A program made the translations under genes and the position numbers. A stretch of DNA of 64,000 nt from the sequence record NC_048182.1, one strand, 5' to 3'. This document shows, piece by piece, positions 5,325-63,776 of the stretch (position 1 is its first letter; every line of letters begins with the position of its first letter). Below the pieces are notes generated by a model that saw only the letters and a list, made by a program, of their open reading frames with translations, searched no databases and was not told the origin of the DNA.

Positions 5325-6458
5325 ATGAGTGAACAAAAAGTAGAAAAGTTTCTGACCGAAGAAAACATCAATAACCTGGCCGCATACATTTTGAATTGCT
5401 GTCAAGATGCTGGTGATATGGGTCATATCGATGCGGAGTATCAGGAATGGCGTAATCGTTACAAAGTATCCCTGGGTCTGATGACTTGGCATATTTCTAA
5501 CGACTTCTTGCCAAAGTTCTGGTTGTTCCTGTCTCAAGGTGAAGAAGGTTGGGACAAAATCCAGGATGCGATTGAAGCAGAAGATGGTACCATCGCTGAG
5601 TTCGTAGCGCCTCTTCTTTCCAGTCTGGAAGAAGCAATGGTCGGTTATGAACCGGATGAATCTGATCCATTCTATAAACTTATGGGTATCGATTTCGAAA
5701 ACGTTGATAAACGTCTGCAAGGGTTGACTACCGCTGGTGCTGGTGTTATCCGTGATCTGGCAAGAACAGTGAATGCTGAGTTGGATCTGGTTAACAAAGA
5801 CCGTGACGTGGTTAAAGACTTCGATGGTATCCTGACTTTTGATACCAACCTGGGTAAAGACTTTAAACTTCATCTGTGCTTCGACAAGATTGCTCCGATC
5901 AATGAAGAAGGTGTGGGTATGGTTATGCGTACCCCGATGACAGAAGAAGACGGTAAGCTGTATCTGCGTGACAGCTACCCTAAAGTTCTGAGCAAGTTAG
6001 AACACATGAACAATCTGGTTAGCGCTTTGTTTGAAACCAAAGCAATCAAAGAGTCTCAGTACCTGACTGACTATACCGCAAGGGCTATTGATGTTCTGCT
6101 TACCAAAGCGTTCACGAACCAAGTGATCACGTACATCCAGTTCGGTGGTATTGATGACTGGCGTGTTCAGTCTAAAGACACACCAAACAACACAGCATGT
6201 TTCAAATATCTGGATGACGAAGTTGAACACATCATCAAACTGCTTGATGAACTTCCTAAACAGGAAGGTGTGGACATCTATTCCATCGATATCGATACGC
6301 TGGCTGTATTCGGTCGTAACAACGATAACAAAGTGGTTACCCCAGCAGTACAGGGCTTTACCGAACAGAAGCTCCTGCGTCGTTACAGCAAGGGATTTGA
6401 ACGTCTGCTCGCTATCCGTCTGGGCATGAGTGATAACGCTCACTTCTTCCGCGCATAA
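5325..6458 (+). CDS. Hypothetical acidic protein
   Basis: 377-aa ORF with phage-like codon usage, divergent from the helicase and ending before a family hairpin. Confidence 0.75.
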   Translation: MSEQKVEKFLTEENINNLAAYILNCCQDAGDMGHIDAEYQEWRNRYKVSLGLMTWHISNDFLPKFWLFLSQGEEGWDKIQDAIEAEDGTIAEFVAPLLSSLEEAMVGYEPDESDPFYKLMGIDFENVDKRLQGLTTAGAGVIRDLARTVNAELDLVNKDRDVVKDFDGILTFDTNLGKDFKLHLCFDKIAPINEEGVGMVMRTPMTEEDGKLYLRDSYPKVLSKLEHMNNLVSALFETKAIKESQYLTDYTARAIDVLLTKAFTNQVITYIQFGGIDDWRVQSKDTPNNTACFKYLDDEVEHIIKLLDELPKQEGVDIYSIDIDTLAVFGRNNDNKVVTPAVQGFTEQKLLRRYSKGFERLLAIRLGMSDNAHFFRA

Positions 6459-6467
6459 CAGTCATAA

Positions 6468-6500
6468 CCCCTTACCCCTCCTTCTGGAGTGGGTAAGGGG
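6468..6500. terminator. Conserved palindromic hairpin
   Basis: ccccttaccc-ctcc-ttct-ggag-t-gggtaagggg between convergent genes. Confidence 0.75.
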
Positions 6501-6509
6501 AATATGTTC

Positions 6510-7289
6510 TTAAAGTTTTTTGCTTTCTTCAACTTGAAGCTGCAACACACGAGTCAAGTCGGACAACAGGTTAACCATCTTACCCACAAAGGTAACATTA
6601 CCAACCAGGTCACTGATCGCATCATTCAATAGGTTACCGCCAACTTTATCGAAGATGATTTCGTTATTGTCAACTTTATCTTTCAGCAGTTTAACAATAT
6701 AGAGAACCTGATCGACTTGTTTTGCTACCAGCTCAACATCACGGGCTTGCAGTGTTTTCACCACACTGTTAAAGTTAGACCCAATGTTATAAGCCTCGCC
6801 AAAGTTAGGATACATATCCTGAACAGCGCGGGTGTAAATACCTGTATCAGATATCACCGCATTAAACTGTTCTTTGGTCTCATCAAACATAATGTTGTTG
6901 TCGATATTACGGATAGAGTGAGAAACTTTACCGCTCACTGCAGCCTGTTTAATATTACGATAAACAACATCAGCCTGAGTAGAAACCAACTTCAACATTG
7001 GGACTGCTCTCAGCACCAATGCTACGTAGTCTTTAAACGAAATCTTACTCGCATTAAAGAAAACTGGAGAAGGGATATGTTTGGATGCTACAGAAAAATA
7101 ATCATTCTTGGCAGCAAAATCTTTCCATACCTCAATCCCTTGAACGGTATGAACGGACTTGTTAAAGTTCTTAGCGTTGAAGGCGTCGACACCCAGGCTA
7201 ACTTCTTTAAAGAAGGATACTAAAGTCTCACCAAAAGTAAGAGCTTCATTGCCCTCTACCTGGGGAACAGTTTGTTCTTGAATAGACAT
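6510..7289 (-). CDS. Probable virion protein (phiKZ gp153-like position)
   Basis: Adjacent to and divergent from uvsX. N-terminal VEGNEA cleavage-like motif. Likely start is ATG 7289, after GGAG. Confidence 0.55.
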   Translation of the reverse strand: MSIQEQTVPQVEGNEALTFGETLVSFFKEVSLGVDAFNAKNFNKSVHTVQGIEVWKDFAAKNDYFSVASKHIPSPVFFNASKISFKDYVALVLRAVPMLKLVSTQADVVYRNIKQAAVSGKVSHSIRNIDNNIMFDETKEQFNAVISDTGIYTRAVQDMYPNFGEAYNIGSNFNSVVKTLQARDVELVAKQVDQVLYIVKLLKDKVDNNEIIFDKVGGNLLNDAISDLVGNVTFVGKMVNLLSDLTRVLQLQVEESKKL

Positions 7290-13960: not shown

Positions 13961-13970
13961 GTGAACATAA

Positions 13971-14001
13971 CCCCTACCCCTCCTTTCGGAGCGGGTAGGG
14001 G
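13971..14001. terminator. Conserved palindromic hairpin
   Basis: cccctaccc-ctcc-tttc-ggag-c-gggtagggg between convergent genes. Confidence 0.75.
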
Positions 14002-32825: not shown

Positions 32826-33676
32826 TGTCAGAAATTAGTTTGGGGAACATCGTTCTTGCTCACAGTGGTAAGAAAGGTATTCTGAAACCTAATGAACAAG
32901 GACTATATCTGCTTAATGCAGGTGGGTTCAACATTCCTAACCATGCTGGTATTACTTATCCAGCCAACGATTACATTGTCGCTCAGATTGAAGAAAACTC
33001 TGATTTGCAACGCCGCGCTAAGATGGGCTATTGCAAAATGGAAGTTGAACATCCAGAACCTTTCTTTTATGTAATCGAAAATGGTGTTAAATATCGTCAA
33101 CCTATGACTGACGTTCTTCAGTGGATTAACCGTCTGCGTTCTTATGACCCGGATAATATCTGTGGTCTGATTAGCAAGGTTATTTTCCGTCTGGAAAACC
33201 CGAACGATCTGTCAGCACCTATCTGGAACGAAATCCTCTGCAAGCCATTTGGTCCTAAGGGTGATCAGTTCCGTGAATCTCTGGATACCCCAGAGCACAA
33301 CACTGCTGTCAGTATCCGCACTCAGATCTCTCCATTCCGTCCTGGCGAAACACGTAAAAACGTTGAATACTGGACTGGTTATGACTGGGTTGCTGAACCT
33401 GGTATGATTCATGCTAACAAGCACATGTCTGCCGGTTGCGAATCCTTCATGTCAGAAATGAACATGAGTTCCAACGTTCAGAAGTTTGCTGTTGCTAAAG
33501 TCATTGCCCGTATGGAAGAAGCTATGGCGCAGGCTGCTACTAACACCGAAGCTCTTGAACACGTTGGTGGTATGGAAGCACTGAATCATTTCTCTACCAT
33601 GCTGAATATGATGAAATCTAAGTATCGCACTGGTGATACTGTTCAGGTTGGTCATAGCTTTACTGATATCTTTTAA
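32825..33676 (+). CDS. Prohead maturation serine protease (phiKZ gp175-like)
   Basis: GGFNIPN, EVEHP (His), AVSIRT (Ser) and GYDWVAEPG; C-terminal self-cleavage-like GGMEA. Confidence 0.88.
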   Translation: MSEISLGNIVLAHSGKKGILKPNEQGLYLLNAGGFNIPNHAGITYPANDYIVAQIEENSDLQRRAKMGYCKMEVEHPEPFFYVIENGVKYRQPMTDVLQWINRLRSYDPDNICGLISKVIFRLENPNDLSAPIWNEILCKPFGPKGDQFRESLDTPEHNTAVSIRTQISPFRPGETRKNVEYWTGYDWVAEPGMIHANKHMSAGCESFMSEMNMSSNVQKFAVAKVIARMEEAMAQAATNTEALEHVGGMEALNHFSTMLNMMKSKYRTGDTVQVGHSFTDIF

Positions 33677-33682
33677 TCATCT

Positions 33683-33711
33683 CCCTTACCCTTCCGAAAG
33701 GAGGGTAAGGG
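33683..33711 (+). terminator. Conserved palindromic hairpin
   Basis: cccttaccc-t-tcc-gaaa-gga-gggtaaggg followed by T-rich sequence. Confidence 0.75.
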
Positions 33712-33787
33712 TTATGTTTTATTTTCTCAGATTAGTTTCCATTATACGTTAACTAATACAAATCTTTTATTTGAAAAGGAAAGAACA

Positions 33788-55663: not shown

Positions 55664-55675
55664 TAAAGCATAACC

Positions 55676-55706
55676 CCCCTACCCCTCCTCACGGAGTGGG
55701 TAGGGG
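55676..55706. terminator. Conserved palindromic hairpin
   Basis: cccctaccc-ctcc-tcac-ggag-t-gggtagggg between convergent genes. Confidence 0.75.
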
Positions 55707-58047: not shown

Positions 58048-58153
58048 TCACACATTCACCTTGTCTGTAAATTGAGAAGCGCACAGAGCGCCGTAGGCAC
58101 TATGCCTTATCAAAGTATAGTCAAACCATAATTCATGGTAATCTAACAAAGAC

Positions 58154-58182
58154 CCCTACCCACTCCGAAAGGAGGGGTAGGG
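58154..58182 (-). terminator. Conserved palindromic hairpin (reverse orientation)
   Basis: ccctaccc-a-ctcc-gaaa-ggag-gggtaggg; a UUUC loop on the minus strand. Confidence 0.7.
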
Positions 58183-60285: not shown

Positions 60286-61130
60286 TACCGTTTCCTTGGA
60301 ACCATCATTTTGAGAGAATCGGCTTTACCTTTCGGATCTGAATAAGCAAAGATCTTTTTCATCTCATTATAATACATATCTTTGAAAGACTGCCCTGCAT
60401 CTGAGTAACCCTGTATTTCATCCTGGATGTCTTCAACAGTTACGCCAAAACGAGACACAGCTTCTTGCATCCCACGGCGACAGTGTTTGTAGATATACGC
60501 TTTGGTACCCCATTCCACCCACTCAGCAAACTTGTCATGAGATTTTGGATGAAGGGTAGTAAAGTGATCATCAAAAGCCAATACGACTTTAGCGATCATA
60601 TTAAACAATGCAGAACCTGCATCGCGGATAATAAAGGAGTTATTACCCGTCATGGTAATGTTGGTAAAGGTACGCTGAACGTTACCATCATCAAGACCGT
60701 TGATCAGACGACTTAATGCGTTGTTCATTTGACCTGTACCGCAGGTAGCATAACCGGCAAAATTATTGCCGTTCATAATAGCCCGGTTGATATTTCCAGG
60801 ATAGACTTCGATAACCTGCATGATACGACGACCACCGGTTAAGAAGTCTGGTACGTTAACGGCAATTACACCGCCTGCAAGATTTTCAATTCGAGCATAA
60901 CTCAAATCGACAACCTCGGTAGTACCGCCAGCGACGTCCATTAAAGGCGCACACATCTTCATGATGACCTTTTCACGAATCCCCTGATCGATACTAAATT
61001 CAGTATTCACGGGTTGCCAAACTGATCCATAGCCGTTGTTGGGATTCTCAAAAGCGAGCTTCAACATGTACGGCGATATATCAGATGGACCATCCTGAAT
61101 ATAGTTGATGGCAAAATCTATAGCGCTCAT
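60285..61130 (-). CDS. Probable virion structural protein
   Basis: 281 aa, translationally coupled to the downstream gene. Confidence 0.65.
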   Translation of the reverse strand: MSAIDFAINYIQDGPSDISPYMLKLAFENPNNGYGSVWQPVNTEFSIDQGIREKVIMKMCAPLMDVAGGTTEVVDLSYARIENLAGGVIAVNVPDFLTGGRRIMQVIEVYPGNINRAIMNGNNFAGYATCGTGQMNNALSRLINGLDDGNVQRTFTNITMTGNNSFIIRDAGSALFNMIAKVVLAFDDHFTTLHPKSHDKFAEWVEWGTKAYIYKHCRRGMQEAVSRFGVTVEDIQDEIQGYSDAGQSFKDMYYNEMKKIFAYSDPKGKADSLKMMVPRKR

Positions 61131-61173
61131 TTATAATACCCTTGCAAGGAAGTTACAAAACATTCAGCATAAA

Positions 61174-61205
61174 CCCCCTACCCCGCCCGAAGGTGAGGTA
61201 GGGGG
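61174..61205 (-). terminator. Conserved-family hairpin with a cUUCGg loop ending the ncRNA block
   Basis: Minus strand ccccctacc-uc-acc-UUCG-ggc-gg-gguaggggg-uuu; G.U pairs form only on the minus strand. Confidence 0.75.
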
Positions 61206-61216
61206 AGTACGATCTT

Positions 61217-61312
61217 GCATCCGACGGTTCCTAAAGGTCTGGAATCCTTTATATCTGGAACCCGTTTCGTCCACTTGTTTTACATCGCCGGACTCGTCAG
61301 GGTTTGCGATGC
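61217..61312 (-). ncRNA. Type I hammerhead ribozyme
   Basis: Minus strand: CUGACGA (61300-61294), stem II GUCC/GGAC, GAAA (61268-61265), stem III CGG(G)UUCC/GGAACCG, GUC triplet (61225-61223), stem I GCAU..CC/GG-AUGC. Confidence 0.88.
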
Positions 61313-61319
61313 TACTCCA

Positions 61320-61890
61320 CATGTAGTAGGGTGAGCTACCCGATATCGTGCTGGTACCCTGGAAGGGACCTATTAGTCAAGATGAACGTCAAAGTTCAAG
61401 ACTGTATCGCAACTGTCGTTCGGGTAACTCAAGAGGTGCAGTAAGGCGTAAAGTAATCCGACGTGACATGCCTGTCTCGGTTTCTCTAGCTTACTGCAGA
61501 ATGGGTGCAACGTTCCCAACTCTGATAGATGTTTCTTTTTATAACCGCCCTGGAAGGTGTTCGGGTTCTACCTTCATAGATAAGACGAGCATCACCTCGC
61601 CATTGCATTCAGCTTATGCTACAGGACATTCTATCAGCGCGTCGCTGCGTCGCCGAGGCTAACCAGGGCAACACCCACCAGAGGCTACTTACAGTAGCGG
61701 ACTTATAAGCCGCCGTTCACCGTCTGGATTTTCCTGAGTAGTAGCGTACTCAGGTTTTGCCTTCTCCAGCACTCGGGGAGGTGAGACCCCAAACCAGAGA
61801 AGGTCTTACAACCAATCTCAGTCGACTGGCAGACCCCTGTTATTAGCCCGCATGGCATATAACCCAGATCTACACTTCCCGACACATCGG
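61320..61890 (-). ncRNA. Large structured ncRNA candidate (about 570 nt)
   Basis: No credible ORF. At least ten helices, including 11-bp and 9-bp multiloop closers and an 8-bp pseudoknot. Wobble pairs favour the minus strand. Confidence 0.7.
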
Positions 61891-61893
61891 TTG

Positions 61894-62166
61894 TTATGCT
61901 GTTGCCATTTCCGGAGCATTGTCCGGATTAGCCAGCGTTTTCACCAAACCTTCGTAACCGCCTTTAATAAAGACGTCATCAACGAAGATCTGAGGAACAG
62001 TACGAACCACTTCACCGCAGATCTCAGACAGCTTTTCGCCATTGATACCTGCTTCAACGATGTTGATGTACTCAATTTCCAGACCTTTTTCTTCGGCCAG
62101 GGCTTTAGCACGATCACACCATGGGCAATTTGGTTTGCCATAGATCTTAACAACTTTGGTTTCCAT
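61894..62166 (-). CDS. Glutaredoxin
   Basis: CPWC active site, TVPQIF and GGY. Confidence 0.93.
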   Translation of the reverse strand: METKVVKIYGKPNCPWCDRAKALAEEKGLEIEYINIVEAGINGEKLSEICGEVVRTVPQIFVDDVFIKGGYEGLVKTLANPDNAPEMATA

Positions 62167-62174
62167 TATAGTTC

Positions 62175-62300
62175 CTAACCAATAGTAATGTGAATAAAAC
62201 TGAACAGCCAGATCAGACCTTCAATGGTGGCCCAGCCAGCTATTGCGCAGATCAGACCGAAAATTACGATCATTCCTGTCCAGGATCCGGAGAACCACAT
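62175..62300 (-). CDS. Small membrane protein (41 aa), absent from the ORF track
   Basis: AAGGTG RBS; MWFSGSWTGMIVIFGLICAIAGWATIEGLIWLFSFIHITIG. Confidence 0.65.
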   Translation of the reverse strand: MWFSGSWTGMIVIFGLICAIAGWATIEGLIWLFSFIHITIG

Positions 62301-62320
62301 AGGTCACCTTTTGAAGTTGT

Positions 62321-62514
62321 AGAGGATCTCGAGAGTTGAACTCAACTTATCATTCAGTACAGTTGAAGTAGAGTTGTCTATCTTCACCGCTAATGGGTTC
62401 ACGACTAAGTCGCTAGAGCATAACTGAACTTGTGTCCCACGACACGACCCTCATTGATTAGGCTCGAGGTCAGGACTTTAACCTAACTACTGCGACGTCT
62501 TCAATGACATCCTC
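62321..62514 (-). ncRNA. tRNA-like structured element (about 190 nt)
   Basis: T-arm UUGAG-UUCAACU-CUCGA followed by GAUCCUC, which can pair with GAGGAU at 62514; several internal hairpins. Confidence 0.35.
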
Positions 62515-62620
62515 GAAGTTGGAATTACACACCGAGCAACCGATAGGTGGGAAGTGGATCCCAGGTATGCACTTTAGGCCCTGGCCTGTTGTACCCCGGT
62601 TGTACTCGATATGTAATATT

Positions 62621-62706
62621 TGGTGGTAGAGGAAGGATTTGAACCTACGAAGCCCGAAGGCAACAGATTTACAGTCTGCTCTCGTTGACCGCTTGAGTAC
62701 TCTACC
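62621..62706 (-). tRNA. trnY: tRNA-Tyr (GTA), class II, CCA encoded
   Basis: GGTAGAG acceptor, anticodon arm GCAGA-CTGTAAA-TCTGT, long variable arm, GTTCAAATC T-loop, ends ACCA. Confidence 0.96.
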
Positions 62707-63364: not shown

Positions 63365-63410
63365 GCTTTATCTCACTTAGTTTTGTTAGTAGGAGGTTTA
63401 GCTGTTTGTG

Positions 63411-63776
63411 AATAACCCGCTTTTCATTTAAGGAAGCGCTGATCCCGAAGGAGGGCTGCGGGTTACTATTGTGAGCCGCTATTGCTAAGCTCAGTTCTAT
63501 CACAGTCGTAACAGAACAAGGTGCCGAACTTAATCGGTTGCTTTGCGACTATCTTCATCAATTTAACCTTAAGAGACACCGTGGTCAGTTTAAGGCAGAA
63601 GAGGGAGTCTATCCAAATTGTTAATGGCTTATATTATCCATGATCGCCACTTCATGGAAAATCCCTTATATACCTAGGCAACCATTAGGTTGATTTGGAT
63701 TCCAAGGGGAGGTACCTCGGGTAGCTCTGTAGTCGAGCAGTCGATCCATGGCAAAATTTACTTTGACTACAGAGCT
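63411..63776 (-). ncRNA. Second structured RNA candidate (about 370 nt)
   Basis: Intergenic region tiled by helices: a 12-bp perfect stem, an 8-bp multiloop stem, a 10-bp hairpin with G.U pairs and a UUCG hairpin. Confidence 0.55.

Follow-up and report, generated by a model that had tools for sequence, protein, structure and literature searches.

Only a handful of large and elaborate noncoding RNAs (ncRNAs) are known from bacteria and phages, and each of them has opened new structural or functional ground. GOLLD and ROOL, two such RNAs, have been reported to form RNA-only homo-oligomers (bioRxiv 10.1101/2024.12.08.627333). Among the small self-cleaving ribozymes, the hammerhead is of interest here. 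Pseudoknots between its stems I and II are an established tertiary contact, occurring in about 40% of natural examples, and their disruption cuts the cleavage rate by orders of magnitude (PMC3088659). For hammerheads in phage and prophage operons, a proposed role is to divide long transcripts into pieces the length of a gene, as with the clustered hammerheads on polycistronic prophage transcripts (Perreault et al. 2011, PMC3088659, Fig. 3). In the present work we analyze a stretch of 64,000 nucleotides (nt), hereafter the window, of the genome of Edwardsiella phage pEt-SU (NC_048182, 276,734 bp; window position = record position − 186,000). Over 61100-62200 the sequence is 100% identical to that genome. 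Within the window, positions 61131-61893 form a 763-nt gap without an annotated gene, every neighbor of which lies on the minus strand. This gap holds a conserved, strand-specific, multi-domain structured RNA on the minus strand, and we interpret the RNA body as representing a new family of large phage RNAs, each of which would be matured by a hammerhead of its own. The predicted mature RNA of 671 nt, which we call RNA-A (61223..61893, minus), begins right past the stop codon of a glutaredoxin-like gene and ends at the predicted hammerhead cut; position p of the RNA is position 61894 − p of the window.

On the minus strand, the interval 61211-61893 has a folding energy of −243.9 kcal/mol, as compared with −213.9 ± 9.7 kcal/mol in dinucleotide shuffles (z = −3.11, with 0 of 20 shuffles as good), whereas the plus strand of the same interval gives z = −0.63. 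Compensatory changes are found in about 20 helices across the family, and independent folds of each homologue converge on one architecture. Concerning coding potential, the stop-free segments in all six frames of 13 members are short and match each other over only 13–61 residues, in various frames and on both strands, with no conserved open reading frame (ORF), and 1-nt insertions or deletions within the best-conserved alignment block break the open frames.

The phage carries split RNA polymerase beta-subunit genes, and the 281-amino-acid (aa) virion protein encoded beside the RNA locus is 76% identical to its counterpart in Pseudomonas phage OBP and 41% to the one in phage EL; from these features pEt-SU is a phiKZ-related jumbo phage. 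To find relatives of the RNA, the gap was compared with 50,697 phage records in a sensitive blastn search. The entire gap is matched by Pantoea phage Survivor with 76% identity, and parts of it are matched by Serratia phages Yubaba and Sureiya, Klebsiella phage N1M2, Shewanella phage SXP01 and Kosakonia phage Kc263. A diverged syntenic copy, recognized by its hammerhead core and common motifs, is present in OBP and in Erwinia phage AH04; blastn of the AH04 version against the phage records gained no further phage. Screening of IMG/VR and metagenomes with a hammerhead pattern and nhmmer provided five new contigs, which are L015, L019 (= L079), L020, L023 and the short L078, the pattern search also giving some 70 unrelated ordinary hammerheads. 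The family consists of nine GenBank jumbo phages including pEt-SU and these five uncultivated contigs, and the comparative set comprises 13 distinct homologous sequences. All members have the RNA in the same syntenic place: the slot that has the tRNA/glutaredoxin cluster on one side and the 281-aa virion gene on the other is occupied in Survivor, Yubaba, Sureiya, N1M2, SXP01, Kc263, OBP and AH04, as well as in the five contigs where their flanks were examined, and the gene neighborhood of the glutaredoxin/RNA locus is identical in all annotated relatives.

RNA-A gives one nhmmer match in the window (61896-61222, minus, E = 2e-146), hence a single copy. Its central 233 nt have 79–81% identity to N1M2 and Yubaba, as compared with 72–75% for the flanking protein genes. 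In IMG/VR, an exact search with a core 18-mer returned pEt-SU itself as the sole match, and a search with the neighbor protein gave no record besides pEt-SU. The hammerhead pattern found 18 hammerheads in 185,579 bacterial and archaeal species genomes, none of them with the large RNA alongside. Two Aeromonas relatives, pAEv1810 and D6, whose neighbor protein is 61–66% identical, were examined up to 3.5 kb from the syntenic site and gave no match. Judged by these searches, the RNA family appears to be confined to OBP/pEt-SU-like phiKZ-related jumbo phages.

The RNA body is built of consecutive domains, all of them on the minus strand. In describing them, we number H1 to H7, by increasing coordinate, the seven helices of an earlier reading of the pEt-SU sequence alone (the original prediction). 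The 5' domain (61809..61893) is a long irregular hairpin formed by P1 (61886-93/61809-16), P2 (61879-83/61821-25), P3 (61866-73/61829-36) and P4 (61859-63/61839-43), with the same architecture in independent folds of eight pEt-SU-type sequences. P2 is 100% paired, with exchange between CG and UA, and in the block that runs from P3 via P4 up to the hairpin tip pairing is 85% and 10 pairs are compensatory. Most sequences have G.U at several positions of this domain, which sets the strand as minus. The AH04-type members have a distinct 5' domain with a 10-bp closing helix, and their copies show a terminator-like hairpin upstream and a conserved AT-rich 5' element. The latter, GUAUAUUAUGUAAUUCA, opens the AH04-type copies (2326-2345 of locus L011, with equivalent 5' ends in L015, L019, L020 and L023) and may be a phage promoter; in the four contigs it is immediately preceded by a terminator-like hairpin, and some of them have the element inside a palindrome, UUACAUAAGUAUAUUAUGUAA.

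After the invariant junction UGUAAGACC come two hairpins (61733..61804). P5 (61797-803/61760-66, equal to H7) has 89% of alignment cells paired over the 13 sequences and compensatory changes in five of its seven pairs, and P6 (61747-54/61733-40, equal to H6) has them in seven of eight. The central domain (61503..61727), which is the best-conserved DNA at the locus, is fully nested. Pa (61723-27/61678-82) encloses Pb and Pc, while Pka (61673-76/61503-06) encloses Pd (61649-54/61667-72) and Pkb (61640-45/61507-12), the latter enclosing Pe (61630-37/61522-29). Inside Pe, Pf (61622-28/61546-52) closes the junction of Pg (61616-19/61605-08), with its invariant loop AAGCUNA, the junction helix Ph (61584-89/61596-601) and Pi (61570-75/61553-58, equal to H4), which bears the near-invariant loop GAACCCGAA and is compensatory in four of six pairs. 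For Pe, three of eight pairs are compensatory and 81–87% of cells are paired. The nested central model as a whole has 86.2% of cells paired, against 77.0% in shuffles (a value of this size reached by 0 of 500) and 28–46% with slid partners, and 27 of its 59 pairs are compensatory; RNAalifold alone recovers Pka, Pkb, Pd and Pg. A tertiary pairing of the GAACCCGAA loop with UUGGG at 61514-61518 is possible, both partners being invariant and hence giving no covariation signal.

Next to the central domain there is a long variable hairpin (61437..61498), with H2 as its base, whose sequence is not alignable across the family; independent folds of the 13 members place one long hairpin here in the pEt-SU type and two hairpins in the AH04 type. 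The 3' domain (61333..61430) is closed by the 11-bp helix H1 (61420-30/61333-43) and contains two inner hairpins and the internal-loop strings GAACGAMAG and GCGAUAUC. Pairing in H1 reaches 91.6%, with compensatory changes in 7 of 11 pairs, and the architecture of the domain is the same in 13 of 13 independent folds. A further hairpin, P0 (61312..61329; 61325-29/61312-16), abuts the 5' strand of the hammerhead pseudoknot; both sides change in all five of its pairs, and 63% of cells are paired (alignment A3). The conserved single-stranded elements of the body include the AAGCUNA loop of Pg, the GAACCCGAA loop of Pi, an A-rich linker, GAACGAMAG and GCGAUAUC. In contigs L020 and L023 the entire central core is absent (alignment A2, columns ~262-475), the 5' domain, the 3' domain, the hammerhead and the RNA beyond it being retained.

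The original prediction had seen here a large, densely structured ncRNA near a tRNA gene of a jumbo phage. This view is borne out by the fold z-score, which is better than that of shuffled controls on the minus strand, by synteny, and by the homologues found in related jumbo phages, with their covariation. Each of the eight pairings that it had listed is complementary in pEt-SU where it was placed, and H1 does contain one U.G pair that is possible on the minus strand only. Among its seven helices, H1, H2, H4, H6 and H7 find comparative support, but H3 (61547-52/61664-69) and H5 (61595-99/61654-58) do not: they are about 60% paired with almost no compensation, and they compete with the better-supported Pd, Pf and Ph. 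The long-range pair 61522-29/61630-37 had been proposed to cross these helices as a pseudoknot. The pairing itself holds, as it covaries, but the pseudoknot rested on the unconserved H3 and H5; once these are removed the pair crosses nothing and becomes an ordinary nested enclosing helix, Pe. Multimerization through two palindromic words has to be abandoned, neither word being conserved as a palindrome: CAGUCGACUG is the 3' strand of P2 and is no palindrome in most relatives, which have GUCAAC or GUUGAC there, and CUUAUAAG is the variable loop of Pb. Finally, the RNA is longer than the interval 61320-61890, running on to 61893 on the 5' side and to 61223 on the 3' side. Immediately 3' of that interval, and missing from the earlier reading, stands the hammerhead, which carries the one well-supported pseudoknot of the locus.

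Its open stem I and its closed stems II and III make this hammerhead (61219..61311, minus) one of type I. Its layout along the minus strand is CAUCGC-A-AACC-CUGACGA-GUCCG(loop)UGGAC-GAA-ACGG-G-UUCC(...)GGAA-CCGU-C/GGAU, in which the slash marks the predicted cut. Judging from the aligned sequences, the core is complete and is accompanied by covarying stems and a pseudoknot, and the RNA very probably trims its own tail by means of this built-in ribozyme. The core consists of CUGACGA (61294-61300, C3-A9) and GAA (61266-68, G12-A14). In the 13 sequences CUGANGA (N7 being free), GAA, the A15.1-U16.1 pair (ACGG...CCGU-C) and the GUC site are invariant, and the match to them predicts cleavage at C17 = 61223, between C61223 and G61222. 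Stem I (61301-04/61219-22; 3–4 bp across the family) shows 85% pairing, with covariation at each of its four pairs (CACC/GGUG, CUAU/AUAG, ACAU/AUGU, CAG/CUG). Stem II (61289-93/61269-73), with a loop of 19 nt, is 93% paired, and its pair 10.4-11.4 alternates between C-G and U-A. Stem III is long (61257-65/61224-31, tip 61246-51/61232-37, with a 34-nt interior); the four pairs nearest the core do not vary, and the distal part shows covariation.

The pseudoknot joins the strand 5' of stem I (61306-11) to loop II (61283-88). It has 6 bp in pEt-SU and 4–7 bp in the family, being present in 13 of 13 sequences and in five pair versions (CAUCGC/GCGAUG, UGUCGU/GCGACA, GUUCG/CGAAC, CGUCGA/UCGACG and CCCG/CGGG). 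On the alignment, the hammerhead has 77% of cells paired, as compared with 32–45% with slid partners, and both-side changes in 22 of 34 pairs; a family covariance model (R1) gives one match in the window, at 61211-61330 on the minus strand, with 105.8 bits. The core, A15.1-U16.1 with H17, the three stems with N10.1-N11.1 and N1.1-N2.1 paired, and the tertiary contact are thus all found, but the Rfam score stays below threshold, as discussed below.

The predicted cut would leave a short 3' product. It starts 15 nt ahead of a conserved, covarying terminator hairpin, CCCCCUACC...GGUAGGGGG followed by UUU (61171..61205, minus), which in pEt-SU is the sole structure of this product; in pEt-SU, Survivor and SXP01 the 3' fragment consists of 15–25 nt plus the terminator hairpin. 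On the minus strand of the window the terminator motif recurs at 13967-13979, 55672-55684 and 58149-58161, besides 61171-61183; 0.12 matches are expected by chance. The copies at 55672 and 58149 sit just past the terminase and thymidylate-kinase genes. Since the motif recurs past other minus-strand genes, we read it as the standard terminator of the phage. A simple terminator scan did not detect the hairpin at 61171-61205, owing to its short U run. The recurrent motif can be written CCCCUACC...GGUAGGGG(U/G)UU, with weaker matches near 2051-2111, 6457-6513 and 33676-33719, and a similar hairpin occurs at an unrelated locus of phage OBP.

Between the cleavage site and the terminator, Yubaba, Sureiya, N1M2, Kc263, OBP, AH04, L015, L019, L020 and L023 have some 270–300 nt, which we call RNA-B (2200-2500 of locus L004, minus; 3415-3708 of L002, minus; 1790-2116 of L007, minus; 3167-3445 of L010, plus; 3077-3375 of L011, plus; and others), while contig L078 ends before this region is complete. 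RNA-B is conserved and structured, with compensatory changes in 25 of 53 predicted pairs, and it is absent from pEt-SU, Survivor and SXP01. With RNA-B past the cut in most members, the hammerhead would split two structured RNAs, and in pEt-SU it would remove the terminator only. The loss of the central core in L020 and L023 and of RNA-B in three lineages implies that both modules can be lost. A match of RNA-B from Yubaba to L10_leader (26.3 bits, E = 0.056) is probably due to chance, much of its score coming from the terminator, and it does not appear in pEt-SU. Two hypothetical proteins are annotated over the homologous RNA or over RNA-B, one on the plus strand of N1M2 (L002 3916-4428), which also overlaps a tRNA-Met gene antisense, and one in Kc263 (L007 2030-2221, minus); both are probably spurious gene calls.

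We think it probable, though well short of certain, that this is a stand-alone, highly structured phage ncRNA, matured by its 3' hammerhead, whose body acts in trans. Minus-strand transcription would take place together with, or just after, that of the tRNA and glutaredoxin cluster. The transcript would then fold into the 5' hairpin domain, the two hairpins, the nested multi-junction central domain, the variable hairpin and the 3' domain, and end in the type I hammerhead, with the active fold clamped by the 6-bp pseudoknot of loop II with the 5' strand. A cut after C61223 would discard the terminator hairpin and give the RNA, now 671 nt long, a terminal 2',3'-cyclic phosphate; in most relatives it would instead free a second structured RNA of about 270–300 nt. 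Where the RNA has a tRNA next to it (N1M2, Yubaba, Sureiya, L078), the 3' processing of that tRNA would set the 5' end, and in pEt-SU this end would be set by whatever parts the RNA from the glutaredoxin message. The processed body would act in trans during infection as a folded scaffold or a binding partner. Its size, the number of its covarying helices and its invariant loops suggest a specific partner or assembly rather than a mere stabilizer, and the upstream terminator-like hairpin and AT-rich 5' element of the AH04-type copies point to an independent gene. A bolder proposal, which we regard as conceivable but doubtful, is that RNA-A founds a new class of large functional RNA specific to OBP/pEt-SU-like phiKZ-related jumbo phages, in which a natural tRNA-RNA-ribozyme cassette yields RNA-A and RNA-B through a single hammerhead that splits their precursor, and the body has an activity of its own (assembly or ribonucleoprotein formation, host-factor decoy, catalysis) serving the unusual cell biology of these phages.

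Several observations weigh against the stand-alone RNA acting in trans. Since nothing separates the RNA of pEt-SU from the glutaredoxin stop codon, it could simply stay as a 3' untranslated region (UTR). The best-conserved module, the central core, is dispensable in the L020 and L023 lineages. With only 13 related sequences, phylogeny could explain part of the covariation, though the slid-partner controls argue otherwise. Rfam does not call the hammerhead: RF00163 (Hammerhead_1) gives 13.9 bits against a threshold of 34 (E = 1, 141-nt query), only the core being aligned. The RF00008 score on AH04 is likewise low (15.7 bits against a threshold of 48.5). We attribute these sub-threshold scores to the oversized loop II (19 nt) and stem III (34-nt insert), which are not modeled, the long stem III being mis-assigned. 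Moreover, pEt-SU has a weak stem I, in which the third pair is an A.A mismatch and the others are two G-C and one A-U, so cleavage may be slow; Survivor, the closest relative of pEt-SU, has four clean stem I pairs, and in Yubaba too this stem is fully paired. It must also be counted here that we infer transcription, self-cleavage, a stable product and a role of the RNA from its sequence.

The close contact with the glutaredoxin gene leads directly to another explanation, in which the RNA is a cis-acting processing or stability cassette: it would be the 3' UTR of the glutaredoxin/tRNA transcript, trimmed by the hammerhead (for example, to a cyclic-phosphate end that resists tailing and exonucleases), with no function in trans. 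We consider this unlikely, although not negligibly so. P1 starts at the glutaredoxin stop codon in pEt-SU, there is no terminator between that gene and the RNA, and the hammerheads of phage and prophage operons have been proposed as transcript cutters (PMC3088659). However, the protection of a 3' end needs neither ~570 nt nor ~20 covarying helices nor near-invariant loops such as AAGCUNA and GAACCCGAA, and removal of the terminator hairpin would normally expose the 3' end. Besides, the RNA follows a tRNA, not an mRNA, in N1M2, Yubaba and L078, and the AH04-type copies sit behind a terminator-like hairpin as separate genes do. The whole locus might also be regarded as a giant allosteric ribozyme, whose upstream domains sense a ligand, a protein or an RNA and gate P0, the pseudoknot and cleavage, in order to control release of the downstream RNA or the fate of the transcript. 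The 5' strand of the pseudoknot does come directly after P0 and the H1-closed domain, so that upstream folding could gate it, and the cut frees a conserved RNA-B in most relatives. Nevertheless, we found no conserved alternative pairing that would sequester the pseudoknot strand or the core; pEt-SU, Survivor and SXP01, which are without RNA-B, have kept the whole upstream RNA and an intact core; and L020 and L023, which are without the central core, have kept the hammerhead. We also know of no natural allosteric hammerhead, and on these grounds we give this explanation a small chance.

Hammerheads are typical of selfish and repetitive elements, and homing endonuclease genes of the HNH kind lie nearby in N1M2 and in Aeromonas phage pAEv1810, so a functionless remnant of a selfish element (an intron, a retrozyme-like or another hammerhead-bearing mobile element) inserted by the tRNA cluster has to be considered too. 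Such an element should hardly be present just once in each genome and always at the same syntenic site, as found in 14 genomes and contigs, with a single ribozyme, without an internal ORF for a reverse transcriptase or an endonuclease, without a group I/II signature, and under evident purifying selection on structure; nor was the large RNA found beside the pattern hammerheads of the 185,579 species genomes. We therefore regard this origin as very improbable. Improbable in the extreme, in our opinion, is that the gap is no RNA gene at all, but a decayed protein gene or a DNA element such as an origin or a packaging signal, with inverted repeats that look like helices. The plus-strand hypothetical protein annotated over the homologous region of N1M2 and the presence of the terminase gene some 3 kb away would fit it, but no frame is conserved on either strand, the N1M2 ORF is antisense to tRNA-Met, strand specificity is seen in both the G.U pairs and the fold z-score, and nothing at the level of DNA can explain why the hammerhead core is complete and its stems covary.

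With regard to the genomic setting, the order of transcription on the minus strand is tRNA-Tyr (62706->62621), a 320-nt gap, a 41-codon ORF, the glutaredoxin-like gene (62166->61894), the RNA gap and the virion gene (61130->60285). The gene of the glutaredoxin/thioredoxin fold (61894..62166, minus; annotation and ORF list) is directly upstream of the RNA. The tRNA-Tyr(GUA) gene (62621..62706, minus; ARAGORN and Rfam) is upstream of the RNA and co-oriented with it, 728 nt away. In N1M2, Yubaba, Sureiya and L078 a tRNA (tRNA-Met where typed) ends about 25 nt or less from the 5' end of the RNA. The gap at 62301-62620 (minus), from tRNA-Tyr to the 41-codon ORF, is also free of genes and has a fold z of −2.9. 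Its part 62306-62453 has 90% identity to L020 and 83% to L015, and its part 62489-62618 has 93% identity to N1M2, where it lies between tRNA-Arg and tRNA-Asn; the modules occur in differing orders among the phages. An Rfam search of this gap was empty, and it probably holds further undescribed small RNAs. At 62321-62452 (minus), a tRNA-Gln(CUG)-like call is made by ARAGORN only at a relaxed threshold of 80% with introns, default ARAGORN and Rfam making no call there. It shows a 7-bp acceptor stem, in which an A-U pair changes to G.U between pEt-SU and L020, a good T arm (CCGAG-UUCGACU-CUCGG in L020) and an anticodon loop with 59 nt inserted on its 5' side. The call may represent an unusual tRNA with an interruption, or else an RNA that resembles a tRNA. 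Another stretch of about 325 nt, 63365-63690, is without a convincing ORF; a non-coding part of the Survivor genome matches its first 75 nt with 82% identity.

As for known RNA families, Rfam 15 was searched at gathering thresholds with the whole window and 12 homologous loci, and at E<=10 with four sub-regions, the gap and two homologues being covered at that level; it returned tRNAs, the sub-threshold hammerheads and the one weak L10_leader match. In these searches no covariance model of GOLLD, ROOL, OLE, raiA or the other curated large bacterial RNAs matched the RNA body, and no Rfam match to tmRNA, RNase P RNA or group I/II introns was obtained for it. This agrees with the original prediction, which had failed to match the RNA to tmRNA, RNase P or group I/II introns and had suggested an undescribed class; with GOLLD, ROOL and OLE also empty at both levels, no Rfam family at hand and covariation present, we find that suggestion a fair reading. 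Two candidates were tried and rejected. For a tRNA or tmRNA, ARAGORN gave nothing in the gap at default settings and only inconsistent mixed-strand matches at relaxed ones. For RNase P, the strings GAAUGUCC and AGAACCCG resemble CR-I and CR-V, but inspection found no P4 complementarity and no model matched. The searchable literature, itself incomplete, and including a 2025 review of nucleus-forming jumbo phages, gave no description of this RNA.

The family adds an RNA to the phiKZ-related jumbo phages, an intensively studied group for which we found no report of a large structured RNA. The canonical hammerhead at the 3' end predicts a defined mature species, and the natural variants, with RNA-B present or absent and with two contigs that are without the central core, are valuable material to dissect the modules.

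Comparison with the type I hammerheads that have a stem I/II pseudoknot (RF00163) reveals the same core, with CUGANGA, GAA, A15.1-U16.1 and GUC cleavage, and likewise an open stem I, closed stems II and III and a pseudoknot of 4–7 bp replacing the loop-loop contact; the phage context found here fits transcript processing. Unlike the usual type I ribozymes, the phage RNA has an 18–23-nt loop II, a 33–36-nt stem III hairpin whose loop has the motif UCCA(G/A) in 12 of 13 sequences, and a stem I of only 3–4 bp. Moreover, its ribozyme is fused 3' to a 570-nt structured RNA, whereas the known type I examples stand between genes or in repeats. With the hammerheads clustered in prophage operons it shares a ribozyme placed in a phage transcription unit so as to separate adjacent functional RNAs, but here there is one ribozyme per locus, parting two ncRNAs or an RNA and its terminator, while the clusters flank genes.

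GOLLD and ROOL are similar in having several hundred nt, many helices and no coding capacity, and in being phage-borne by tRNA genes. The difference is that no sequence or model match relates them to the present RNA, which comes from jumbo phages of Gammaproteobacteria, and to our knowledge they do not carry a self-cleaving ribozyme. As self-complementary candidates in the phage RNA only the invariant AGCU of the Pg loop and a near-invariant GAUAUC remain. In MALAT1/mascRNA, where RNase P acts, and in synthetic tRNA-RNA-ribozyme cassettes, the 3' end of a long RNA is made by a structure-specific cut and not by termination. The logic is the same as that proposed for this locus, where a defined RNA would be freed from a longer transcript by the processing of a tRNA at one end and by a cut that structure directs at the other. 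Those systems are eukaryotic or engineered, and the resemblance is one of design, not of ancestry; the layout of the phage locus presents in natural form what synthetic biology has built as a tRNA-RNA-ribozyme design.

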